Shown: positions 49,204-64,000 of the stretch, piece by piece
How positions within the stretch are numbered: position 1 is the stretch's first letter
Layout of the letters: each line of letters begins with the position of its first letter
Source: Guillardia theta CCMP2712
Taxonomy: Eukaryota; Protista; Cryptophyta
Reading direction: 5' to 3'
Length of the DNA: 64,000 nucleotides
Assembly (NCBI RefSeq): GCF_000315625.1
Contig: NW_005434635.1
Coordinates: 531,617-595,616, forward strand
Program-made: the position numbers and the translations under genes
Notes under the pieces: generated by a model
Told to the model about the DNA's origin: nothing
What the model saw: only the letters and a program-made list of their open reading frames with translations
Databases searched by the model: none

Positions 49204-52200
49204 TCAGCTTATATTGCATGCTTTGCTCTTTTTGTTGCCCGATTCAAGCTGCTTCATCTTCTCCGACGCATCCTTTTGCTCTTCTCGAACTTTTCCTGTC
49301 AAACATCAGGTGTGAGAGACTGTCATGATCAAGAGGAGGCGCACGGAGCTCTTCCTCCATGCGAGCTTTTTCCTCAAGAATCTTATTTATTTCATCATCT
49401 GCTCGACTCTCGTCAGTTCCATACTTTTAAGCAATGAACAAACCTGAGCGGGCAGGTGCAGTCTTGGGTTCCTGTTGCAGGGTCTTTTCGTTTAAAAGTC
49501 GATCACGCTCTTCCTGCAGCTTCTTTGCCTCCTCCTCCATCTGCTTCTGCAATTTCTGTCTTTCTAGTTGGAGTCTATTTTGGATCTCCTTTTCGATGTC
49601 TTCCTTAATGTTTTGCGAGCTACTGCCATCCTTCATTGTCTTCAACTCTCTTTCAAGCCGTTCTTTCTCTTGTTTCAGTTTGTTTGCCTCGTCTTGCAGA
49701 CGCTTGGCCTCTATCTTGCGCTCTTCTTCGATTCTTTGCTTCTCCAGTCGAGCAGCTTCTAGTTCCTGCCTGAATTTCTCCGCTTCTGCCAACTTTTCAG
49801 CTGTCTCGGGCTTCGTGTTCGAGGCAGTGCCCGCTTCATATTGGCGCATATTCAGATCGTCATCGTCCTCTTCCTCGATTATGAGAATATCGGAGCTCCA
49901 TCCCTCCTTCTTGATTTCCGAAGATGCAGATGCAGAGGTAATTGGTCGGAGAAGATTCTCCTCCAGCTCTTTCAATCGAGCTTCCTTCTCCTCGAGCTCT
50001 CGTTGCTTCTTTTCATTCTTCTGATTCATCTCGGCAATCTCTGCATGGGACGCACGAAAGTTTCCCTTCCGGGTGGCGTGATTGGGATTGAAAGACTCTA
50101 CTCCTTGGATCTGGAACGAGATGGCCTCTGCTAACAGGGTCTGTTCGAATTCCTCGTTGAGGACGACTGGAAATCTTCTCTTGTGATTAAATATTGGCTG
50201 AGACGTTCTCTCGTTGCATCTCTCTGTGTAGTGCTCTTGCTCATTGAAGTCAATGTAGACGACCAAGTAGTTGTGAAGATGATCGGGAAGACCTCGAGCA
50301 GACAAAATCTCAACTTGCAGAACTGCATTTGACATCCAAATGTCCCGGATGTTTTCTGCTGGCACTCCATCCTCCACCTCAAAGGTCTTGCCCTGCTCGT
50401 TGAGCACTTCAATCTTGACGCTGATCTCGCCCTCCGACTTTCCCTTGTAGTCGATGATTGGCGTCGTCAGTTCAATTGGAATTAGCCAGTAAAGACTGAC
50501 AAAGAACATTTCAGTGAGGGAAAAGGGGGACAGGGTGAGAAAGAATTCATGTATCGCATGCAAAGAAAACATCTGAAGGAACAGAGGTGAAGCAAAAGAA
50601 TGCAAATTACAGAGTTAATGCTCCTTGACACTGAAGAGCAAAGAAGAAAAGAGAGACGTCAACAAAGAGAAGGAATGAAGCAGCAAGCTGCAAAAGAGAA
50701 GGTGAATGAAAACAACTTTACCTCTCAAGGTAGACGTGAGCATGACCCAACACAACATCGTCGTCGACATCTCTGAATGGATCTTCTTTTTTCGAATCTT
50801 CTTCTTCGCTGTCCAGCAGGTGGATTTCCCTATGATAGTAATCTCGCATGCTGTAAATGCGATCCATAAACTTTTCCCGCGACCACAGTCGATTCTTCTC
50901 TGTCAATGTATCTACTACTCTGACAGCAATCGTGTTCTCATTCTGCAAGGAGCCTATTGAGTTTCTCCTCATCCTCTGTCTAGTCTCCATGACATTTCTC
51001 TGCACAATCTTGAGCTCAAACTTACATCCCTTGTCAAGCTCCTCACTGATCATGTTTGCTTCGTGGATTAGCGGAAGCATGGATACGATCCTGTCATGCA
51101 GTAATTCATTTTCTCTCCTCTTCTTGCTCTGCTGTGCTCGAAGCTGCTCAGCCTCTTCCTCCCTGTGCCGCAGTTGTTCCTCCAACTGCTTTTGACGCTC
51201 AAGTAGTGCGCGCTCTTCTGCTTCGAATTTCTTCTGCGCTTCCTCCTTCTCCTTTCCAACCAGGCTTTTCATCTCTTCATCCTTTTTCTGAATTATGAGC
51301 TGCTGCTCTTCGAGTTTCTTTTGCACTTCTTCGCGTTCCTGCTGCAATCTTGTCTCTGCTTCTTCAATTTTCTTCTTCATTTCCTCTGCCATCTTCAATT
51401 CTTGCTCGCTCTCCACCAACACATCTGAATGTCCAGCAGCAATTGCAAGTTCGTGCTGAGCGAATTCCCAGTCGATGACTGGGGCTTCTGGAGGGGTTTC
51501 TCCCCTGGATATTGCCTGCTGACGAAGCCTTTCATGTTCGGCTGCTTCCAGGGGATTGTTAAAGCGGAAGAGATGGTTGTTGCCGAAGCGGATCCTGTCG
51601 TTTTGTTTCAAAAGCTGCGGGCTATCGGAGTCAAGCATAATGCCGTTGATCCAGGTGCGAGAGTTGCCAACTTTAACAATGCTGACTGCTCCACCATCGT
51701 TGATGATGCGACAGTGCTCCTTCGACATGTTGAGCCCCACGAATTTGATAGTTTGCGGCACGTCTGCATCTGGTCTGCCTACAGTTGTAGTCCCGCCGCG
51801 CAGGGCGTAGATGACAGCTCCAGACTTCATCGGATCTTCGTTTATGTTGACCAACTGTGGCATCGAGAGTTCATCCTCCGATACAGCGATTCCCATCTCT
51901 TCCATGATTCGCTTCCTATCTGACTCCATCGCCTCAGCATCTTTGATTTTTTCATCCCATGATTTGTTGAGCTCTTCCAGGAGCTTCTTGCTTTCCGCCA
52001 GCTCCTCTTCGAGCTTGGACTTCTCCCTAGCTGCTTCCTCAGCCTCCTTCCTTGCTGCTGCTGTCAAAGATTCAAGCTCAACCTCGCTCGGAGTGGATTT
52101 TTCTGCAAGCTTTCTCAGCCGTTCTACCTCTTCCTGCAACTCTCTGATCAGCTTTTGGTTGGGTCTTCATTGACGATGGCGGTGTTCTTGATTTGCTTAG

Positions 52201-53760: not shown

Positions 53761-53877
53761 ATTTAGGTTTAGCTGGGTTTAGGGTTAAAGTGAGGGTTTA
53801 GGGTTAAGAGTTTAGCCCAAAATGAGGCCAAGCAGGGTTTAGGGTTTAGGGTTTAGGGTTTAGGGTTTAGGGTTTAG
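53761..53877 (+). repeat. Telomeric (TTTAGGG)n tract: degenerate at 53761-53815, perfect at 53834-53877
   Basis: Five perfect TTTAGGG units plus partial units; G-rich strand points to the window end. Confidence 0.95.
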
Positions 53878-54217
53878 AGGCGCCGTTATTTTCGGCAGGG
53901 CGCCGTTATTTTCGGCAGGGCGCCGTTATTTTCGGCAGGGCGCCGTTATTTTCGGCAGGGCGCCGTTATTTTCGGCAGGCGCCGTTATTTTCGGCAGGGC
54001 GCCGTTATTTTCGGCAGGGCGCCGTTATTTTCGGCAGGGCGCCGTTAATTTCGGCAGGGCGCCGTTATTTTCGGCAGGGCGCCGTTATTTTCGGCAGGGC
54101 GCCGTTATTTTCGGCAGGGCGCCGTTATTTTCGGCAGGGCGCCGTTATTTTCGGCAGGGCGCCGTTATTTTCGGCAGGGCGCCGTTATTTTCGGCAGGGC
54201 GCCGTTATTTTCGGCAG
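53878..54217 (+). repeat. 20-bp tandem repeat (AGGGCGCCGTTATTTTCGGC) x17
   Basis: Near-perfect units (two 1-nt deletions, one substitution); internal GCCG/CGGC inverted repeat. Confidence 0.95.
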
Positions 54218-54307
54218 CATGGCTCCTCGTCAGGTGTAGGGGAAGCCGCCAGGGCGCCAAGGAAGCTGCAAGCGAGAGGTTTGTATACTTCAAATAGCTT
54301 TCTAAGT

Positions 54308-56416
54308 ATGGTTCTTCAGTATGATGAAAATGTTCGCAACCTGCTGTATCGGAGATCATGCCAATACACGCAGAGCGGACTTGTGGATGCCTCTGTCCTC
54401 GAAGCTGATCTCGTCGAGAGGGTGAAGAGCTTCGCGAAGCGTTATCCGAACAGCAGGACAGCCCAGGCTTGCAAGGCTGTGGAGGGATGCACCCCCGACG
54501 CTATCGCAGAAGCCATCCGCTCGACATGTCAGCACTGGCAGGCACGACGTGAGTTTCTGCAAGAAGCGATGACTGGATGGAGTGAGCAGATTGAAGAAGC
54601 CAAGAAGGAGAAGGTCGAGACATACACCGCCTCAGCAGGCACTGCGGCGAGGTGACTTCCTTCATCTCCATGACTCTCCTGGGCATCTCCTCGGTGTATG
54701 TCAACCATGAAGAAAAGCTGAAGAAGAAATTTGAAGAGATCGGACTGATCGTAGACTCAGTGCAAGAGAGTAAAGCAATCATGTGGAAGGCTCCGTATAG
54801 ACCCGAGATAGCGAGTGCTGAGGAGATCCCGGTGACTGTTTCCTTCCTCCGCAATGCACAAGCGGAGAAGCTCTGGCAGGGAAGAGAGGACTTCGCGATC
54901 GATGGTCGCAAGTTCACAGCTGTACATGTGAGCATCGTGCACGATCGATCTTTCAAGATTCGAGCCAAGAGAGGACCCTGGGGCAAAGGGGGCAGCTTGG
55001 CAGAGCTGACTCACCTGCTAACCTTGGGCGGCATGACAACGGCTGAGATAGCTGCCGTCTATCGCTATCAGCTGCTGCGCCAGTCCCTTGCAGCGGTCCA
55101 ACTCCAGCCGCTGGCAGGCATGCTGGTCGCTGGGGCGCCAGGACAGCAAGTTCATCGCTGTAGGGGCCAACGTCATCTGGAGACAGAGGGAGGTGGAGTG
55201 GATCGTCTCCTCGAGCTGCCCAGAGGCGAATGATACAGCATTTCGAGCTTTCCGAGAGAGCGAAGCGATGGAGGGAGTACACCTGACTCTGTTCAGCGAG
55301 GACCCGAAGATCAGAGAGGCGCTCGCAGTCGAGTTGACAGCTGATCGCTTTGTGTCCAGAAATAAGTTGAAGAAGGCATCAAGACTGCAGAAGAAGGCAG
55401 GCGGCAAGGACGGCAAGGAGATCAAGATCATCATCAAGTCGACGGCGGCATCTGGTCGCTTCACGAGGAAGGAGATGGAGGGGCTGTGCAACGGCGGCAA
55501 CACGTCTATCGCAAGAGTCAAGAGAGTCTTGTTGGAGATCGCTAACAGGCTCGAGATCAACGTTGAAGGCATCGACATGGAGGAGGATTTGAACACCAAG
55601 TCCTGGAACGGGTCCAAGCTATGCATCCTCCTCGGCTCCACGGAGGATGCTCGACGCATGATGAAGGAGCTGCCCTTCTATCTCGAAGGCGCAGCAACCA
55701 AGCTCGAAGCAGTCGGCTTCGACAAGGAGCCTGACTCTGAGGCGGCTGGTCAGCGGGGCACCAGCGACGCAGCGCAGCGACAGGAGGAGAGCGAGGGAGA
55801 GTGGCTGGAGTTTACAGACCTGGAGAGGATCACAATGGAGGCAGCATCTCCGTCAAGCCAAGAGGACATGCAGCTCGTCAGCGAGCTGTCAGCAGTCATC
55901 GAAGATGCAGCTTCTTTGAACGAGGCGGGGACGAGCGAGCCGATCAAGCTGGTCCTGGACAAGGCCGTTGGCAACCTCCACGACACGTTCTACTCTCCGG
56001 GGAGCCTGGAGTTCATGTCGCTGGGAGAGTGGGCGAAGATGCCAGAGGAGCAGGGAGTTGGGCGCAACGTTCTCAAGGAGAAGCTGGGGAAGTGGCTGCA
56101 GAGCAAGCGCTGGACTCGCGTGCAAGGAGAGAGCAAGAAGGCAAGGAGGGGCAGCGCGTTCTCGCCACGGGCAACGGCAGCTGCTGAGCTTGAGCAGGAG
56201 GCGGAGAGCGACGACATAGAGCGTCGATCTCTTAGCTTCCTGTTCATAGCACTGAGTAAATTCGCAGAGATGCATGTGCTGGCCTGCTCGCTGAAGGTGG
56301 ACAAGAAGGACCGACTGCGGGTGGAGATGAGGGAAGATGGCGAAGAAGAGGAAGACATGGAGGAAGAGCAAGGCGAGGGCGAGGAAGAAGACGGGGCGAG
56401 CCCGTACCGAGCTTGA
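54308..56416 (+). pseudogene. Frameshifted paralogue of the E2 716-aa ORF1-like protein
   Basis: ORFs 54281-54655, 54652-55233 and 55088-56416 match consecutive parts of the E2 protein; frameshifts near 54645 and 55130. Confidence 0.8.
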
Positions 56417-56446
56417 GCTGAGCTCAAGGTAATGAGAGAAGGTGGA

Positions 56447-56654
56447 GGCGACCGAAGGCCAAGGTGAGGAGAGGCAACTCTCCTGACTGAGGCTGAGGAA
56501 GCTGAATGGAGGAGGAGTAGGTGGCGACCGAAGGCCAAGGTGAGGAGAGGCAACTCTTCTGACTGAGGCTGAGGAAGCTGAATGGAGGTAGAGTAGGTGG
56601 CGACCGAAGGCCAAGGTGAGGAGAGGCAACTCTTTTGACTGAGGCTGAGGAAGC
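56447..56654 (+). repeat. 76-bp tandem repeat (~2.7 copies) in the E1 3' UTR
   Basis: GGCGACCGAAGGCC recurs at 56447, 56523 and 56599. Confidence 0.9.
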
Positions 56655-56837
56655 CAAGAGAAGACAGCAAAAGTAGAAAGTAGAAAGACGCCTCAGAAGC
56701 AGGGTTCGCATTGTAGGCCGTGTACTCCCAGTGCTCGAGCGCCTCTTTAGACTAGGATCAAATTGCATAAGCCCACAACGAGGCCGAGCAACATTCTAGC
56801 ATTCTAATAAACTCACATAATAATAATAATAATAATA

Positions 56838-56854
56838 GGGTTTAGGGTTTAGGG
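56838..56854 (+). repeat. Telomeric spacer GGG(TTTAGGG)2
   Basis: Directly visible between the E1 tail and the start of E2. Confidence 0.95.
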
Positions 56855-59706
56855 CCGCCCCTTCCCGAGGCATGCACATCCGCGGCGCGTAGGGAGAGCG
56901 CAAGGGGACCGGAGGAAGCTGCGAGCAAGTTCTTGGTATAGTTCAAACAGCTTTCTAAGCATGGTACTACAGTATGATGAGAGCGTTCGCAGCCTGCTGT
57001 ATCGGAGATCATGCCAATACACGCAGGGCGAGCGCTCTGGAGGCCACGTCGAGGAGGCCGCCGACCTCGTCGAGAGGGTGAAGAGCTTCGCGAAGCGGTA
57101 TCCTGGTAGTAGGACAGCTCAGGCTTGCAGAGCTGAGGGGGGATGCACTCCCGACGCTATCGCTGAAGCCATCCGCTCGACATGTCGGCAGGCGAGACGC
57201 GACCTGTTTGAAGACTCTCTGAGTGAATGGAGCTCAGAGTCGAGAGCATGGTTTATTCAACAGATGGAGGAGGCCAAGAAACAGAATGTCGAGACATACA
57301 TCGGCACCGAAGGCACCGAGGGGACCTCCTTCATCTCCATGACTCTCCTAGGGATTTCCTCGATGTATGTTCGACAAGAAGAAAAGTTGAAATCGAAGCT
57401 TATGGAGCTAGGTCTCATGGTAGACTCAGTCGATGGAGTCGACAAGGCCATCATGTGGAAAGCACCTTACAGACCTGAGATAGCACGAGCAGACGACATC
57501 TCAGTCACCGTCTCCTTCCTTCGGAATGAAGCAGCCATGGAGCTATGGGAAGGCAGGAAAGAATACTGCATAGAAGGGAGAGCCTTCCGAGCCACAGAGG
57601 TGAGCATTGCACACGACCGGTCGTTCAAGCTTCGAGCCAAGCGAGGACCTTGGGGCAAGGGAGGGAGCCTTGCCGAGCTATCGCAGCTCTTAGCTCTCGG
57701 AGGAATGTCGACGGCTGAGATCGCTCAGATTTATCGATTTCAGCTGCTCTCGCAATCTCTTGCAGCCGCAGAGGTACAACCACTTGCAGGCATGCTCTTG
57801 CAGGGTCCTGGGCAGAGAGGTCGCAAGGGGCCGAGCCCGAAGACGTATGTCGCTGTTGGGGCAAGTACGGGCACTCTCCAGCAAAAAGAGCTAGAGTGGG
57901 TGCTCAGCTCGCCTTCGACGGCAAGCTGCGAGCAGACCTTGGCCTCGTTCAGAGAGAGCGAGGCGATGGAGGGGGTGCATCTCACTCTCATCAGCGACGA
58001 CGCCAAGCTCAGAGAGACGTTTGCAGTCGAGCTCACAGCCGACACCTTCGTGCCGAGGGGAAAGATTGCCAAGCAGAGGAAGGCACTTCGCGAGAGAGAT
58101 CATGCGGGGCGCAGCAGCTTCAGAGTACAGATCAAGTCGAGGTCAAGCATGAGCACAGGCCGCTTCTCGAGGAAGGAGATGGAAGCGCTGTGCGGAGGAG
58201 GTAACACATCGATCACGAGAGTCAAGCGAGCCATGTTGGAGTTAGCAAGAAGAATGAACCTCAAGCTGGTCAGCGTCGAGGTCGAGGAGGATCGTGACAC
58301 GCTCAGCTGGGATGGGAGCCTGATAGCTCTCTCCCTGGCGACCAAGGCAGAGGCTCGACGCTTGATGGAAGACATGCCCTTCTACTTGGAAGGGATCCTG
58401 GAAGTCAAGCTGGAAGCTATGGGTTTTAAGCTCAACCCTCAGCATGAGGAGGAGAGGAGCCCGAGCAGCGAGGAGCAAGCCCAAGAGCCCCAAGGGCAGC
58501 AGCAAGGCGCTGGATGGCTGGAGCTCAGCGACATCGACAGGATTACTATGGAAGCAGCGTCGCCGTCAGGGCCAGTCGACCAACAGGTCTTGCTCGACCT
58601 CTCGACGATGCTCTTGGAGACATCAGAGGAGGAGCTGCTAGCTGGCAAGCCGATCTCGCTGGAGCTAGACAAGAGTGTTGGCAAGCTGCATGACACCTTC
58701 TGCTCGCCGGGCAACGTGGAGTTCATGACGCTCGGAGCTTGGGCAGCCACGCCGACGCTGGGATCGAAGCGAAACATGATGAAAGAAAAGCTCAGAGCGT
58801 ACCTCGGCGAGCAGCGCTGGACACGGGTGCAAGGGAACAAGGCAGCGAGGAGGGGCAGCGCCTTCTCTCCAAGGGCAGCAGCGACTGATGCGCTCGAGCA
58901 GGAGGCTGAGAGCGATGACATCGAGAGTCGATCTGTAAGCCTCTTGTTTCTTGCGATCAGTAAATTTGCTGAGCACCATGGGTTGAGCTGCACGGGCAAG
59001 GTCGACAAGCAAGACCGACTGCGGCTGATGATGAGGGAGGAAGTCGACATGGAGGCGGAGGAGGGCGAGGGCGTGGAGGAGGAGGCCGGTGCAGGCCCCT
59101 CGCGCGCTTGAGGCTCGAGTCAAGTCTTAGAGGTGGACAAGAGGCGGAGCGGAGCTGTGGGCCCCATGGGGGGAAGGAGGAAGAAATAAATGAGGTGGAC
59201 ATGGGGCAAGCAACGAAGGTAAGGGCAGGTAAGCCGGTGGGGGAGGGGGGAGGGGGGCCGGGAGGAGGAGGCCGGGCGGAGGCCGGCCGGGCTCTAGGGC
59301 CCGGTCCGGACCGAGGCCCGGGGGAAGGGACGTGAGTCCCAGGGACCCATACGCATTCCACCTACCACCTTATCTCCTGATTGTCCTTATCCCTCATTCA
59401 CTCACTGGCCGAAGGCCGGCCGAGACCGCCAAGGTGTGTCGGAGCCGAGGAAGCAACACAAGTTGAAAGCACGGACGACCCAGGCCAAGGCCGGCGGAGG
59501 AAACTCCACTGGCTGAGGCCGGGGAAGACCACTGAAGTATATCAGAGGAGGGAGCAGAGCAGAAGCACGGCTGCCATAAGGGCCAGCCAAGTCGGGCCGA
59601 ACTGCCAGGTCACGAGATCCCTGTTAGACTAGAATAGAGCAAGGTGATAACAAGCCATGCAACCTACCTAGCATTCTAATAAACTCAACTACTACAACTA
59701 CTACTA
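56855..59706 (+). mobile_element. E2: non-autonomous telomere-inserted retroelement with an intact ORF1-like gene and no RT
   Basis: Telomeric repeats on both sides; shared 3' motif; (CTA)n tail; single intronless ORF. Confidence 0.82.
56961..59111 (+). CDS. 716-aa ORF1/Gag-like protein with two putative RRM-like segments and an acidic tail
   Basis: Intronless ORF with no RT motifs. ISMTLLGI..KLKSKLMELG..VTVSF..AAMELW..IEGRAFRA and VQIK..LVSVEV..IALSLATKAEARRLM..LEG show RRM-like beta/alpha patterning (inference). Confidence 0.7.
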   Translation: MVLQYDESVRSLLYRRSCQYTQGERSGGHVEEAADLVERVKSFAKRYPGSRTAQACRAEGGCTPDAIAEAIRSTCRQARRDLFEDSLSEWSSESRAWFIQQMEEAKKQNVETYIGTEGTEGTSFISMTLLGISSMYVRQEEKLKSKLMELGLMVDSVDGVDKAIMWKAPYRPEIARADDISVTVSFLRNEAAMELWEGRKEYCIEGRAFRATEVSIAHDRSFKLRAKRGPWGKGGSLAELSQLLALGGMSTAEIAQIYRFQLLSQSLAAAEVQPLAGMLLQGPGQRGRKGPSPKTYVAVGASTGTLQQKELEWVLSSPSTASCEQTLASFRESEAMEGVHLTLISDDAKLRETFAVELTADTFVPRGKIAKQRKALRERDHAGRSSFRVQIKSRSSMSTGRFSRKEMEALCGGGNTSITRVKRAMLELARRMNLKLVSVEVEEDRDTLSWDGSLIALSLATKAEARRLMEDMPFYLEGILEVKLEAMGFKLNPQHEEERSPSSEEQAQEPQGQQQGAGWLELSDIDRITMEAASPSGPVDQQVLLDLSTMLLETSEEELLAGKPISLELDKSVGKLHDTFCSPGNVEFMTLGAWAATPTLGSKRNMMKEKLRAYLGEQRWTRVQGNKAARRGSAFSPRAAATDALEQEAESDDIESRSVSLLFLAISKFAEHHGLSCTGKVDKQDRLRLMMREEVDMEAEEGEGVEEEAGAGPSRA

Positions 59707-59729
59707 GGGTTTAGGGTTTAGGGTTTAGG
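59707..59729 (+). repeat. Telomeric spacer GGG(TTTAGGG)2TTTAGG
   Basis: Directly visible between the E2 tail and E3. Confidence 0.95.
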
Positions 59730-62700
59730 TGATAGCCTGCAACAGTGGAGTCGAGCTGCAAATACAAACAAACGAGTTCAACACAGGGAAAATACCTCTA
59801 ATGATCGGGCTGCCTCAAGGTGGAGCAAGTAGCCCACAACTGGCCAACTTGGTGCTATGCATCCTCTCTAGGCAATTGGACAAGTGCAGCACAGGAACAA
59901 CAAACAACCTGTCCTTCGCCGATGACATGGTACTCATCGCACACACGATGAAAGAAATGCGAGAATTGGTAGCAGTGGTGGATTCCTTCTGCAAATGGTC
60001 AGGACTGCAAATCAACAATAAGAAATCAGAGATAACCAGCTTCGACTATGCTCGCAAGGGAGAGGTTCCTGGTGCGAACAAAATAACGGTCATGGGGGAA
60101 CCTGTCGAAGCCCTACCGGCTACTAAACCGTTCAAATATCTCGGCTATCGCATCTCTCTGTGGAAGGAAGAAAGACGAAGAATAAAGGGCTGCCCTTTCA
60201 CTTGGGGAGAACGAGCATACGTCTTTGAAAAAACCAAAGAACTGATCAAAAACATCAGCTCGTCGAGTTATACTCCTGCGCAAAAATTCTACCTGGTGAA
60301 AGTTGGAATTCTCAACGTCTTTCGCTACTCCGCAGTCATGACTGGATGGACTTGGCGAGATCTACAAGAATTAGATCAACTGTGGATACGAGCTTTTAAA
60401 CAAGCGTTAGGACTGAGCAAAAGTACAGGGAATGGTATATTCTACCTGCCAACAGAGAATGGAGGGCTGCAGGTCCCTCATCCTGCCCCAATCCTAGGGC
60501 GAGCAGCGCTACGATACATCGAACGAGAAGTGAATAGTAAGCAAGGTGGAGACATCCAAGATAGACTGATATCTAAACTCAGAAACTGGTTTGCGGAATG
60601 GGGATGCCAAACAATCCTCGAGCTCCAAAGAGAAATGAATTTTCGAACTATGGAGCGTGATGTGGTGCGGGGACCCGAAGCTTTAGCAGTCTGGCTGGCG
60701 GAAAAACTAAACACGAGGATCAGCTGGGCCCACATAGAAGCAGGTCACCTACCTGGAAGCATCTCCCTCCTTCATAGGATGGAGGATATGGTGGCAAACT
60801 TGAACGACAGCGACAGACCACAAGGCTGGACGACCTTCCAAGCCTTATGGAGGCAACTCCCGAAACTCCAATTCTCCTTGCTACGCAATATACGACCTAT
60901 CGCTGACGAAGAACTGCATTTGCCAAGGAAGCTCTGGCCTTTCCCAAGGCAACGCGAGGAGGCGGAGGGGATCGTAATGCAATTGCTACAAGAAAATGTC
61001 ATCTGGGTAAGCAGCGTCAACAGAGCATCAGGAACAAAGAGGAAAAGACGAGAGGTTGCCTCGCAGGATAGTGCTACAACCCGAAAACGAAAGTCACACC
61101 CGCAATCAGAGGAGGACCGGGAGGAGACATCCAAAAAGCATCGGGAAGCAGCAGAAGAGAGAAGGCCACACCCAGCTCATGCAAACACAAGATCCCTCAT
61201 GGCTAAACTACTAGGCAATCTGGATCAACAGGAACACCTAATCCTAAAAGGTAAGGAAAGTTTCAAAATCAAGGGCGACATAGCAATCATGGACCGGCCC
61301 AGAAGTCACACGGGCCAAGAACAAGACATCAAAGAAGCTGAACCTTCCCTTCGCTCGGCGCCATTTGCGAGGAAAGAAGATGACGATGGAGCCAAGAACC
61401 CAGAGAAGACAGAGATCCTACTGCAAATTGCTAAGTATATCAGCAAAACACATAACAGCTCACTCAACTCGCAAGCTTGGTGGGAACATCTAACCACCGC
61501 CATGGCTGAAATTCGAGATAGACAACAAGGCCTTCCGCTGTCGTACGAATTTCTAGAACACTTGGGGATGCTCGCTGAAACAAAACAGTTCAGCAACTGG
61601 CCCACCCTCTATCACCCGACAATCCAGGCCGCAACCGATAGCTTGCAGGAAGACGAGGTTCGACGTGAAATAATATGGATCGACCAACAGGAACAATACC
61701 TCAGCTACGCCGCATGCGAGTCTGGAACAATCTTGATCGGATGGAACCAAACTTGCTTCAGGAAAGAAATCCCTGACGGCTTCATGCTAGTCGGTAAGGT
61801 ACCTAAAGGATCAGAAATATGCTACGCTGCAAATTTCTGGAGGACGGGCGATCGGAGCCTCAGGAAGTCACAAGACGACCTGATTGTCTACTGCAAAGAG
61901 TCGGAACAAGAGAGAATAATTGTCCAACTCACAGTACACCTGATCCCTGAACAGGAGGAGCTACAAGAATACCGAAGGAAGCAAAACGAAAACTATCAAG
62001 CCTCGGCCAAACAGGAGAAGAACAGGAACCAAGTGTGGTCCGCAATCCACGGCGACATATCACGAAACAGGAAGGGTCGATCAATGTCGATAGGATACAG
62101 CACGCAAGACAAGGAAGGAGAGCAGGAACGCGGAGCGATCAAGATACACGGAAAATGCAGCGTCATCAGAGCACATACCATCGCACTCTGCATACTCCTA
62201 CAAGCGATTTGGGAACAAAGAGGCAAACAGAAAACAATCAGGAAAATCTTCGTCCTCTTTAAATCAACCCGAATGCATCGCTTTCTTACGGACACCCTCA
62301 GATGGTCTACCATGCAGTATGAAGACGAGCTCGTATACGACTTGGCAGGAAGACTGCAGGAATGCCTGAGCAAATTTCAGCGGGAAGGCATTGAGATCAA
62401 CCTCTCTATGATCGCAGACCACACCGTAGTGCAAGAAGCTGCAGAAGAAGCCCGCAAGGGAAAATCCTCCTTCTCCTCCACGTGGGAACGGGCCCTCATC
62501 GACAGCGACTTGGGATTCTGCATTGCAGACGAAGAGAACTTCAAGCCGGGGATGGATCGATTGAAAATATGGGATAAGATAATCAGAGAAGAACAACTGG
62601 AACTGAGGAGGAAAGAAGCCCCCCTCACCTTGACGGAAACCTTTCTCCTGGAACCACAAGCGGGCAGAAGGATCCTAGGTCGAGCCTTACAGAGGTGTCG

Positions 62701-63403
62701 CGGATCAGTACTTCGGACAGCTATCCAAGCCATTACCTGGTCAGCACCAACGAGGAAAAAGCTGTTCCAGTGGAAGAAGACGACATCCCCCTGTTGCCCA
62801 TGGTGCGAAGGCAGGGAAGAAAGCTGGGTGCATGTTCAGCTAGCCTGCAAAGAATTTGAGCTCATGATCGCGTTGGCACACAACAGAGTAATGGAGACAA
62901 TCAAGGGATGCCTGACAGAAAGCTGGAAGAAGAAAAGTGTTGAACAGGAGAGTTGGTGGCAAACGCCAATCAACTCTATGACAGGGCTAGGACTGACTGC
63001 ACCAGAGCACGGCAATCTCATACCAGATGGGCTCTGCTACTTCAGAGGGAGCAATCGCATTGTGCTGGTGGAGATAGCGAGAACTTCAGAGTTCACGGGC
63101 GAGGGAAGCAGTCTGGCAAACCTGAAAGCAAAGTTTCAGGAGAAAGAACAGAAATATGCAGCACTGCGGGCAGAGATGACAAGCAGGAGCGACAACACAG
63201 AGGTCTTACAAGCCACGTTCATTGCAGGAGTGAGAGGCAGTATTATGGAGCGGGAATGGACCACAAATTTCCAGAACTTGCTCATGGACGAGGATATGAT
63301 TGACAGAGCCATGACCAAGATAGTCATCCAGCTGCTCGAAGTGCAACACATGCTGTGGACCTCAAGGAGACGAGGAGACACGACTAACAGAGAACAAGCA
63401 TGA
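59729..63403 (+). CDS. Truncated Pol: RT C-terminal part + degenerate RNase H + CCHC knuckle + PD-(D/E)xK endonuclease
   Basis: GLPQGGASSP, FADD, INNKKS, FKYLG, GGLQV (RT and thumb); CPWC..ESWVHVQLAC, AHNRV, IPDGL..VLVEIART..KEQKY (RLE); uninterrupted for 1224 codons. Confidence 0.92.
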   Translation: MIACNSGVELQIQTNEFNTGKIPLMIGLPQGGASSPQLANLVLCILSRQLDKCSTGTTNNLSFADDMVLIAHTMKEMRELVAVVDSFCKWSGLQINNKKSEITSFDYARKGEVPGANKITVMGEPVEALPATKPFKYLGYRISLWKEERRRIKGCPFTWGERAYVFEKTKELIKNISSSSYTPAQKFYLVKVGILNVFRYSAVMTGWTWRDLQELDQLWIRAFKQALGLSKSTGNGIFYLPTENGGLQVPHPAPILGRAALRYIEREVNSKQGGDIQDRLISKLRNWFAEWGCQTILELQREMNFRTMERDVVRGPEALAVWLAEKLNTRISWAHIEAGHLPGSISLLHRMEDMVANLNDSDRPQGWTTFQALWRQLPKLQFSLLRNIRPIADEELHLPRKLWPFPRQREEAEGIVMQLLQENVIWVSSVNRASGTKRKRREVASQDSATTRKRKSHPQSEEDREETSKKHREAAEERRPHPAHANTRSLMAKLLGNLDQQEHLILKGKESFKIKGDIAIMDRPRSHTGQEQDIKEAEPSLRSAPFARKEDDDGAKNPEKTEILLQIAKYISKTHNSSLNSQAWWEHLTTAMAEIRDRQQGLPLSYEFLEHLGMLAETKQFSNWPTLYHPTIQAATDSLQEDEVRREIIWIDQQEQYLSYAACESGTILIGWNQTCFRKEIPDGFMLVGKVPKGSEICYAANFWRTGDRSLRKSQDDLIVYCKESEQERIIVQLTVHLIPEQEELQEYRRKQNENYQASAKQEKNRNQVWSAIHGDISRNRKGRSMSIGYSTQDKEGEQERGAIKIHGKCSVIRAHTIALCILLQAIWEQRGKQKTIRKIFVLFKSTRMHRFLTDTLRWSTMQYEDELVYDLAGRLQECLSKFQREGIEINLSMIADHTVVQEAAEEARKGKSSFSSTWERALIDSDLGFCIADEENFKPGMDRLKIWDKIIREEQLELRRKEAPLTLTETFLLEPQAGRRILGRALQRCRGSVLRTAIQAITWSAPTRKKLFQWKKTTSPCCPWCEGREESWVHVQLACKEFELMIALAHNRVMETIKGCLTESWKKKSVEQESWWQTPINSMTGLGLTAPEHGNLIPDGLCYFRGSNRIVLVEIARTSEFTGEGSSLANLKAKFQEKEQKYAALRAEMTSRSDNTEVLQATFIAGVRGSIMEREWTTNFQNLLMDEDMIDRAMTKIVIQLLEVQHMLWTSRRRGDTTNREQA

Positions 63404-63976
63404 AGGATATAAGATGGTTGGAAGATGACTGGGTAAAGATCAACGAGGAAGGATCAAAAGGGAAGCCTCAAAAGCAAGCAACCAGGATCAGCATGGCAGG
63501 GAAGGGGCAAGGACACAGAAGACAGATGGAAGACGAAAGGGCAACGGTCAACGAGGAGAGACCGAAGGGGAAGCCTCACAGGCAAAAAACAACCAACATG
63601 GCAAGGAAGGGGCAAGGACACAGGAGACAGATGGATGACGACAGGGGAAAGGGCAACGAGGACAGACCGATGGGGAAGCTTCACAAGCGGCAGGCAGGGA
63701 AGGGACATGGACTTAGCGCAAAAAATAGAAAGGTGGACGGTTACACTGAAACCGTCAACCCGGGCCCGGAGGAGATACGGCACCGGCGGCTCGGAACGGA
63801 GGACTATGGAAACAACAGAAAAAGCGGAACAGCGATAGAACTCTGGATGCCACAACGGGCCATCCAAGAAGGGCCGCTCTGCCAAGCGTGAGAACCCATT
63901 TAGACTAGACTAGACCGGGAAGGTACCCGATGCGACTATTCTAGCATTCTAATAAAATCGACTACTACTACTACTA
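59730..63976 (+). mobile_element. E3: 5'-truncated non-LTR retrotransposon with a restriction-like endonuclease (Dualen/RandI-like architecture), inserted in telomeric repeats
   Basis: ORF begins inside the RT directly at the telomeric junction; shared 3' motif; (CTA)5 tail followed by GGTTTAGGG. Confidence 0.9.
63400..63891 (+). CDS. Possible 163-aa downstream ORF built from ~105-108-bp imperfect repeats; overlaps the Pol stop (ATGA)
   Basis: ATG at 63400 overlaps TGA at 63401; CAACGAGG recurs at 63441, 63549 and 63654. Confidence 0.35.
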   Translation: MKDIRWLEDDWVKINEEGSKGKPQKQATRISMAGKGQGHRRQMEDERATVNEERPKGKPHRQKTTNMARKGQGHRRQMDDDRGKGNEDRPMGKLHKRQAGKGHGLSAKNRKVDGYTETVNPGPEEIRHRRLGTEDYGNNRKSGTAIELWMPQRAIQEGPLCQA

Positions 63977-64000
63977 GGTTTAGGGTTTTTTGGTTTAGGG
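63977..64000 (+). repeat. Telomeric repeats (TTTAGGG, one degenerate unit) to the window end
   Basis: Directly visible. Confidence 0.9.

Follow-up and report, generated by a model that had tools for sequence, protein, structure and literature searches.

A Candidate 3′-Terminal Cis-Acting Module Common to Autonomous and ORF1-Only Families of a Telomere-Repeat-Specific LINE System in Guillardia theta

Introduction

Long interspersed nuclear elements (LINEs) that insert into telomere repeats are already known (SART/TRAS, GilM/GilT, Zepp, MoTeR, and Tx1-1_ACar), and telomere-specific retrotransposons have been found in a few lineages: insects, Giardia, Chlorella, Magnaporthe, and an anole lizard (PMC10088271). 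A 3′ stem-loop common to a stringent-type LINE and to partners that lack reverse transcriptase (RT) is likewise an established concept; in such LINEs the stem-loop is bound by the protein of the second open reading frame (ORF), ORF2p (PMC4176376). The window analyzed here, by which we mean the whole 64-kb stretch of the genome of the cryptophyte Guillardia theta CCMP2712, closes with a head-to-tail array of three elements (E1, E2, and E3) set among TTTAGGG telomere repeats, each ending in the same pair of short motifs. Our analysis suggests that this motif pair is probably the core of a 3′ cis-acting module common to two autonomous families (C and D) and two families that encode ORF1 only (A and B), and that it lets the RT-less families use the C or D enzyme. 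To our knowledge, a Gag- or ORF1-only partner of an RT-bearing element at chromosome ends is known essentially from Drosophila alone.

Distribution and Families

The two motifs, TTAGACTAG (56747, 59624, and 63900) and CTAGCATTCTAATAAA (56796, 59668, and 63941), lie 49 nt apart in E1, 44 nt in E2, and 41 nt in E3, exactly where a first-pass annotation of the window had placed them and nowhere else in it. The first has three matches in the whole window against 0.26 expected; the second has three even when two mismatches are allowed, against 0.04 expected. Across the genome, the 16-nt 3′ arm has 166 matches with at most one mismatch (90 on the plus strand and 76 on the minus strand), compared with none for a reversed control. 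Nearly all copies are located at contig ends and point outward, and each has a (TAA)n or (TAC)n tail leading into TTTAGGG repeats; among the minus-strand matches listed, 37 of 42 have a contig start no more than 32 kb away, and those on the plus strand lie near contig ends. This placement by strand means that the 3′ ends face the chromosome ends and that the sense strand is the G-strand. Taken together, the window expectation, the reversed control, and the outward-pointing concentration at contig ends rule out both a chance occurrence and a motif common at ordinary gene 3′ ends, an alternative raised in the first-pass annotation.

Four families, A to D, are defined by the sequence flanking the 3′ arm. 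Family A (103 copies, with E1 as its representative in the window) and family D (~24 copies, none in the window) have (TAA)n tails; family B (~33 copies; E2) and family C (13 copies plus variants, ~13–17; E3) have (TAC)n tails. A and B are ORF1-only families, and C and D are autonomous. Family D has only TTTAGAC and TCTAATAAACTCA in common with the other three.

Every nonrandom sequence among the 132 listed from gapped pattern searches belongs to one of these families, and none of the 132 is a passenger resembling a short interspersed nuclear element (SINE). A whole-genome search with an Infernal model, in which the best 150 of 21,106 first-look candidates were scored, gave 148 matches and re-found the A and B copies; this scope leaves room for further passengers. 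Two A-type 3′ ends are just 441–443 nt apart at each of two sites (C29:716596-717039 and C82:389395-389836), which may reflect a recurrent short derivative or a duplicated subtelomere.

Conservation of the 3′ End

Autonomous elements and RT-less elements that are otherwise unrelated at the DNA level have one 3′ end in common. Comparison by blastn finds 20 nt common to A and C, corresponding to the 3′ arm alone, and 23 nt common to A and D, with nothing more; the ORFs of A and B are 68% identical. B and C are 75% identical over the last 140 nt, so the claim that E3 has no other evident similarity to its neighbors stands for E1 and fails for E2. The 20-nt arm is 100% conserved between A and C, whose ORF1 proteins are just ~30% identical.

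Environmental contigs of a close relative (L052, L095, and L096) carry A-type arms unchanged around an enclosed loop that has diverged; no other observation argues more strongly for constraint on the arms. Protein searches for relatives gave one close lineage with usable 3′ ends (L051 and L052); of the other sequences, L094 breaks off before reaching the 3′ end, and L053 represents another element. Scanning metagenome contigs for the pattern added just two further A-type ends, both belonging to the same sample series.

By linker and tail type, A goes with D and B with C; by the type of second helix and bulge (described below), A and B group with C. A hybrid 3′ end is also present (L079; C8:1176600-1176678, minus strand), in which a D-type stem-loop is followed by the C-type linker ATCGAC. 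The discordant groupings and the hybrid show that lineages exchange their 3′ ends.

Predicted RNA Structure

RNAfold predicts a common architecture for the terminal stem-loops (SL2) of E1, E2, and E3 (z-scores of −1.7, −2.7, and −2.0, respectively): a 5-bp helix, UUAGA/UCUAA (P1); a 3-nt CAU bulge on the 3′ side; a CUAG/CUAG helix (P2) with family-specific extensions; and an inner hairpin. The E1 stem-loop (56747–56807, plus strand) is closed by pairing of 56747–56751 with 56803–56807, with the bulge at 56800–56802 and a P2 of CUAGGAU/AUUCUAG. That of E2 (59624–59679, plus strand) is closed by 59624–59628 with 59675–59679, with the bulge at 59672–59674 and a P2 of CUAG/CUAG plus UAG/CUA, and that of E3 (63900–63952, plus strand) by 63900–63904 with 63948–63952, with the bulge at 63945–63947, a P2 of CUAGA/UCUAG, and an inner hairpin of CGGG/CCCG. 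The pairing of TTAGA with TCTAA and of CTAG with CTAG, proposed in the first-pass annotation, is thus predicted in all three elements, as is the extension of the stem by the enclosed sequences (UAG/CUA in E2 and E3, and the inner hairpin of E3).

All lineages and sublineages fold into a hairpin closed by P1. Dinucleotide-shuffle z-scores are negative in 11 of 11 representatives (−1.2 to −3.9), and when only the interior is shuffled, all 17 representatives are more stable than their shuffled counterparts (mean z of −2.24). The pair probability of P1 is 0.3–0.99 with up to 400 nt of context, and 97.9% of alignment cells are paired, compared with 25–47% after sliding of the partners. Family D forms its second helix from a sequence different from that of A–C; the helix persists where the letters do not. 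These models make a hairpin closed by UUAGA/UCUAA likely. The CAU bulge, by contrast with its earlier description as invariant, has CAG, UAU, and AUU variants and is absent from family D, so that the fine stem anatomy first proposed is valid for A–C only.

A second small hairpin (SL1) lies ~15 nt upstream of the stem-loop in all families (for D, it was seen in L054 and L051). Its loop, U(C/G)CCA(A), is conserved, and its stems vary from family to family: GUAC/GUGC, CGCU/AGCG, and CCAACC/GGUUGG, with a weak stem in B. In the window, SL1 is tentatively assigned on the plus strand to 56722–56734 in E1 (GUAC and GUGC around the loop UCCCA), to 59599–59611 in E2 (GAAC and GGUC around UGCCA, weak, with three of four pairs formed), and to 63875–63888 in E3 (CGCU and AGCG around CUGCCA). 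This mini-hairpin may be a better case for covariation than the main stem.

Insertion Marks

The 3′ junction, TA(A/C)|TAGGGTTTAG, is identical in 21 of 21 intact ends, and the telomere tract upstream of an element mostly ends in TTTAGG|; the 5′ junction would fit a C-strand nick at CCCTA^AA combined with a top-strand cut placed four bases beyond it, which would duplicate 4 bp of the target. Tails of 3–16 units, (TAA)n or (TAC)n, directly follow the hairpin region. Units that come after telomere tracts start at 1189, 1911, 1934, 2493, 2581, 2685, and 2780 in family A and at 865 and 2681 in family B; C and D starts are likewise scattered, and one C fragment has just 45 nt (L034:8885-8940). Judged from the sequences, this combination of scattered 5′ truncation, variable tails, and a fixed junction is the mark of independent events of target-primed reverse transcription (TPRT). 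With telomere repeats on both sides, a single orientation, and a fixed junction within the repeat unit, the elements classify as telomere-specific.

Families A and B bear the marks of TPRT and encode no RT themselves, so that C or D must supply it. Trans-mobilization of the RT-less families by TPRT, already proposed in the first-pass annotation, is strongly supported by the 20-nt module as the sole DNA similarity between A and C and by the truncations, variable tails, and fixed junction; the two helices named there contribute no covariation signal. Priming by a G-overhang, as in Drosophila, is ruled out because the sense strand is the G-strand, and for the same reason only a C-strand nick can supply the primer.

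Many units are cut off in ORF1 or in the 3′ untranslated region (UTR) and capped by TTTAGGG in variable phase (L046:4679, L035:4315-4663, L038:6362, L002:1854-1985, and others), a pattern indicating terminal erosion and then healing by telomerase, after which a new insertion occurred. Tracts between units most often consist of two telomere repeats (16 of 38 tracts); such short tracts may result from loss of fragile long internal tracts, by analogy with the arrays of the MoTeR system, in which long internal telomere tracts are fragile (PMC7367193).

Coding Capacity

ORF2 of the autonomous elements is predicted to have the Dualen architecture, with an apurinic/apyrimidinic-type endonuclease (APE), an RT, and a restriction-like endonuclease (RLE). 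One full-length copy of family C (contig C15, ~10.8 kb) runs from ~29 tandem 20-nt repeats at its 5′ end through an ORF1 of ~700 aa and a 2503-aa ORF2 to a 3′ UTR of ~500 nt; another full-length element was seen on contig C7. The APE (Exo_endo_phos, 33.2 bits against a cut-off of 24.5) occupies residues 450–633 of ORF2, N-terminal to the RT (RVT_1, residues 1168–1421, E of 4e-35), which is about equally similar to the RTs of R2 (E of 1e-22) and L1 ORF2p (E of 2e-18). At the C-terminus, the C, C, H, C, PD, E, R, K, and Y residues of a CCHC finger and a PD-(D/E)xK RLE are invariant in 11 sequences, and a profile of this region matches the CCHC and RLE region of the R2 protein with an E of 6e-18, which leaves little doubt about the predicted assignment. 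No Pfam match to RNase H was obtained between the RT and the RLE (residues 1430–2170 of C or 1450–2250 of D), even at E up to 10, a negative that leaves room for a diverged domain. RT regions without stop codons, of which at least 11 are C-type and at least 12 are D-type, lie near contig ends.

The N-terminus of ORF2 also has a weak Ulp1/C48-like cysteine protease domain (L032:1330-1670, residues 147–260); in a D-type protein (P0001, residues 158–274), the Ulp1-like domain is above the Pfam cut-off. In lineage D, the stop codon of ORF1 overlaps the start codon of ORF2 in a UAAUG (L051:2251-2255 and L052:2441-2445), and in lineage C the two ORFs are in frame with TAA plus 9 nt between them (the C15 copy, L050:2886-2900); both arrangements suggest termination-reinitiation. 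The two ORFs of SART1 are coupled by UAAUG, as in lineage D.

The A and B elements are 2.9 kb long, with an ORF1 of 715–716 aa as the sole coding region. This ORF1 is homologous to that of C and D: the E1/E2 and C proteins are 30% identical (E of 5e-74), and identities are 59% between A and B, ~30% between A/B and C/D, and 35% between C and D. Because of this homology and these identity levels, A and B are an old ORF1-only sister lineage and neither SINEs nor recent deletion derivatives. A SINE partner would be short and noncoding, with a Pol III-derived head, a description that the 2.9-kb coding elements do not fit; in place of the SINE-like passengers envisaged in the first-pass annotation, the partners are ORF1-only relatives of the autonomous elements with a homologous ORF1. 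Neither a Pfam family nor an Atlas neighbor was found for ORF1, and its AlphaFold model is poor (mean pLDDT of 47.7).

The Array and Its Transcripts

The window ends where contig C39, 595,616 nt in length, ends, and the array runs along the plus strand from 53838 to that point as (TTTAGGG)6, E1, two repeats, E2, three repeats, E3, and terminal repeats. Ordinary host genes lie upstream, including one for a kinesin-associated/FHA protein (50718–52136), and the proximal (TTTAGGG)6 tract (53838–53879, plus strand) starts the array just distal to the last of them. E1, of family A (53880–56837, plus strand), has an array of 20-nt tandem repeats at its 5′ end (53880–54218) and an interrupted ORF1 with a longest open stretch of 442 aa, compared with 715 aa in an intact copy (L046:5132-7276). 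Its 3′ terminus (56806–56837, plus strand) consists of AAUAAA (56806–56811), the linker CTCACA, and a (TAA)6TA tail joining GGGTTTAGGG.

Telomere repeats on the plus strand (56838–56854) separate E1 from E2, of family B (56855–59706, plus strand), which has an intact ORF1 (56961–59111). The 716-aa product has no Pfam family and is 96–99% identical to several GUITHDRAFT hypothetical proteins; the element closes with AAUAAA, the linker CTCAAC, and a (TAC)n tail (59678–59706, plus strand). Beyond a second set of repeats (59707–59729, plus strand) lies E3, a 5′-truncated copy of the autonomous family C (59730–63976, plus strand). It keeps the C-terminal 1224 aa of ORF2 (59729–63403), which cover the end of the RT, the linker, the CCHC zinc finger, and the RLE, together with a 3′ UTR of ~500 nt, and it finishes with AAUAAA, the linker ATCGAC, and a (TAC)4TA tail (63951–63976, plus strand). 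Slightly degenerate terminal telomere repeats (63977–64000, plus strand) reach the contig end.

The tandem 20-nt repeats at the 5′ ends of elements (53880–54218 in the window; L050:119-720) are of at least six sequence types, all of the form AGG...GGC, in copy numbers from 1 to ~29; they may be promoter or 5′-junction modules.

The RNA data consist of one stranded raw-read run and three contig sets. Sense reads cover the 3′ UTRs of E2 and E3 at a depth of 1–4. Antisense RNA across ORF2 (59860–63030) is far more abundant than sense reads and is multiply spliced, with CT..AC on the plus strand corresponding to GT..AG introns of 41–68 nt on the minus strand (for example, the joints 60241–60293, 60706–60753, 62364–62424, and 62560–62629); it is also polyadenylated, with a poly-T loose end before 62244. 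Abundant spliced antisense RNA is likewise a property of TART in Drosophila.

Proposed Mechanism and Alternatives

We consider it fairly likely that the conserved 3′ end is a cis-acting module, ~100–140 nt long, of a telomere-repeat-specific, dual-endonuclease LINE system. The module RNA would form a long irregular hairpin closed by UUAGA/UCUAA, after which would come the unpaired AAUAAA, 6 nt of linker, and a tail of (UAA)n or (UAC)n. The conservation, distribution, foldability, junctions, and truncations of the module are findings of the analysis, and we infer that ORF2p of C or D binds the hairpin on its own RNA and, in trans, on the RNAs of A and B, which would supply just their own ORF1p. 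One of the two endonucleases would nick the C-strand at CCCTA^AA, and the exposed ...CCCTA-3′ end could anneal to the tail UA (or to read-through UAGGG) and prime reverse transcription. The expected outcome is an invariant (TAA/TAC)n-TAGGG junction, a sense strand that is the G-strand, 3′ ends directed toward the chromosome end, and frequent 5′ truncation.

Several points weigh against this explanation. The nine base pairs of P1 and P2 are the same in all 37 distinct A, B, and C sequences; covariation is silent there and is therefore unable to prove these two helices. A covariation test, suggested with the first-pass annotation, gave compensatory changes in inner helices only: one pair in an A-only alignment (C-G to U-A between A1 and A2), one in a D-only alignment (GC/GU/AU), and a third read by eye from the minimum free energy folds of two A2 copies (GCCG/CGGC in L074 and GCUG/CAGC in L075). 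Shuffled alignments match the counts of compensatory pairs in 309 of 500 trials for A and 263 of 500 for D, so the counts are not significant, and covariation was rejected as proof of P1 and P2. Lineage D lacks the CUAG/CUAG helix as well as the CAU bulge and has its bulge on the 5′ strand; the conserved feature may be P1 plus the hairpin as a whole, and nothing finer. Independent lineages are few (~6–8), with one close relative found outside this genome, and the RNA data are thin, the loose ends of element RNA over the 3′ UTRs being uninformative. Finally, AAUAAA is invariant in all 55 distinct copies though its last four bases are unpaired, the unpaired UAAA being as invariant as the paired bases, and the hexamer is kept in L052 despite a 1-nt insertion (an inserted A). 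Part of the constraint must therefore be on primary sequence.

The behavior of the hexamer is what would be expected if the conserved block were a primary-sequence 3′-end signal, with AAUAAA and its context directing cleavage and polyadenylation inside the tail and the complementarity of the arms incidental or secondary; an A/U-rich hexamer also precedes, by ~20 nt, the only poly(A) site in the RNA data, which belongs to the antisense RNA (62244). We nevertheless regard this as unlikely, as it leaves unexplained the conservation of the 5′ arm 40–65 nt upstream, an interior that always extends the helix, and the (TAA)n/(TAC)n tails without poly(A) on the copies; a poly(A)-signal role can in any case coexist with that of the hairpin. 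The module could instead be a packaging or binding site for ORF1p and not for the RT-bearing ORF2p. All module-carrying families encode ORF1p, and even the poor model of this protein (mean pLDDT of 47.7) contains two beta-alpha-beta-beta-alpha-beta stretches that could resemble RNA recognition motifs. However, ORF1 has diverged to 30% identity while the RNA arms are identical, and an unchanged signal fits one shared protein, ORF2p, better; since the binder in the stringent LINEs that have been studied is also ORF2p (PMC4176376), an ORF1p site seems improbable.

We attach a low probability to the idea that the 3′ ends are identical through recent exchange, by template switching or recombination among array neighbors, and not through long-term selection on an RNA signal. 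Elements do adjoin one another in arrays, the hybrid L079 joins a D-type stem-loop to a C-type linker, and family A has a P2 and bulge resembling those of C but a linker and tail resembling those of D. Exchange gives no account, however, of why only module-bearing ends survive in all four lineages or why the arms are fixed while the loop diverges in a second organism, and repeated capture of the same end would itself imply that the end is required. Action of the module at the DNA level, for example as a landmark positioning the next insertion or as a subtelomeric protein-binding site, would agree with the modal distance of just two telomere repeats from a tail to the next element (16 of 38) and with the P1 sequence TTAG/CTAA, which is the telomeric duplex core. 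Short interstitial tracts are also expected from survivorship, however, given that long ones are fragile in MoTeR (PMC7367193), and long tracts follow terminal copies; we find a DNA-level role extremely improbable.

A bolder version of the cis-acting module read by ORF2p, which we offer tentatively and with some doubt, is that G. theta, with a working telomerase, keeps a Drosophila-like consortium of mutually dependent ORF1-only and ORF1-plus-ORF2 elements in which the 3′ module is the sole common address label; its closing helix would copy the telomeric duplex at the nick, so that one protein surface might read both the RNA and the DNA target. The closing helix (56747–56751 with 56803–56807 in E1, and the same in E2 and E3) contains TTAG/CTAA, the telomeric duplex core at the proposed nick. 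This resemblance was noticed post hoc; the helix could be an RNA mimic of the DNA target.

Comparison with Known Systems

No earlier description of the G. theta system was found in the searchable literature, a scope that excludes Repbase reports and subscription journals. As far as that literature shows, the cryptophyte host, the clade of dual-endonuclease LINE, and the existence of ORF1-only partners outside Drosophila are new. Dualen LINEs have undergone expansion in some other cryptophytes (PMC12747079). The system would represent a second, independent case of division of labor at chromosome ends, here alongside active telomerase. A small (~60–140 nt), sharply defined module present in four lineages makes template choice by a LINE RT testable in a site-specific system, and it could guide the design of insertion tools targeted to telomere repeats.

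Among stringent LINEs, UnaL2 with UnaSINE1 and ZfL2-1 with ZfL2-2 resemble the G. theta elements in that a short tandem-repeat tail of variable repeat number comes after a conserved 3′ stem-loop and in that the autonomous element and its RT-less partners have this 3′ end in common (PMC4176376). In contrast to the tRNA-derived SINEs of stringent pairs, the G. theta partners are 2.9 kb long and encode ORF1, and the LINE itself is dual-endonuclease, telomere-specific, and outside the L2 clade, with binding by ORF2p a presumption here. In the Dualen/RandI LINEs (Kojima and Fujiwara 2005, as cited in PMC4640811 and PMC9977147), as in lineages C and D, one ORF2 places an APE before the RT and an RLE after it; the two citing papers describe Dualens as dispersed and not telomere-specific. 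An RNase H is reported for Dualen, and ORF1-only partners have not been reported.

Three systems are similar in their location. SART1 and TRAS1 of Bombyx mori insert at one position of the telomere repeat, and their 3′ UTR and tail matter for a precise start of reverse transcription; unlike the G. theta elements, they belong to the R1 clade, have an APE only and poly(A) tails, and lack ORF1-only partner families (PMC7265360). MoTeR1 and MoTeR2 of Magnaporthe oryzae are an RLE-bearing, telomere-targeted LINE and an RT-less partner with the same 3′ terminus (77 bp), and they also form arrays with short telomere tracts between units, terminal truncation, and de novo telomere addition. They differ in being CRE/SLACS-like, without an APE, and in having their 5′ ends nearest the chromosome end; in addition, MoTeR2 has no ORF1 and shares 860 bp of 5′ sequence with MoTeR1 (PMC7367193). 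The HeT-A, TART, and TAHRE elements of Drosophila show the same split of labor at chromosome ends between Gag/ORF1-only and RT-encoding elements, in head-to-tail arrays. However, they belong to the Jockey clade, have oligo(A) tails and 3′ ends directed toward the centromere, join directly onto the chromosome end, and take the place of telomerase, whereas the G. theta elements enter TTTAGGG repeats, with outward-facing 3′ ends, in a genome where telomerase is clearly active and heals truncated units.

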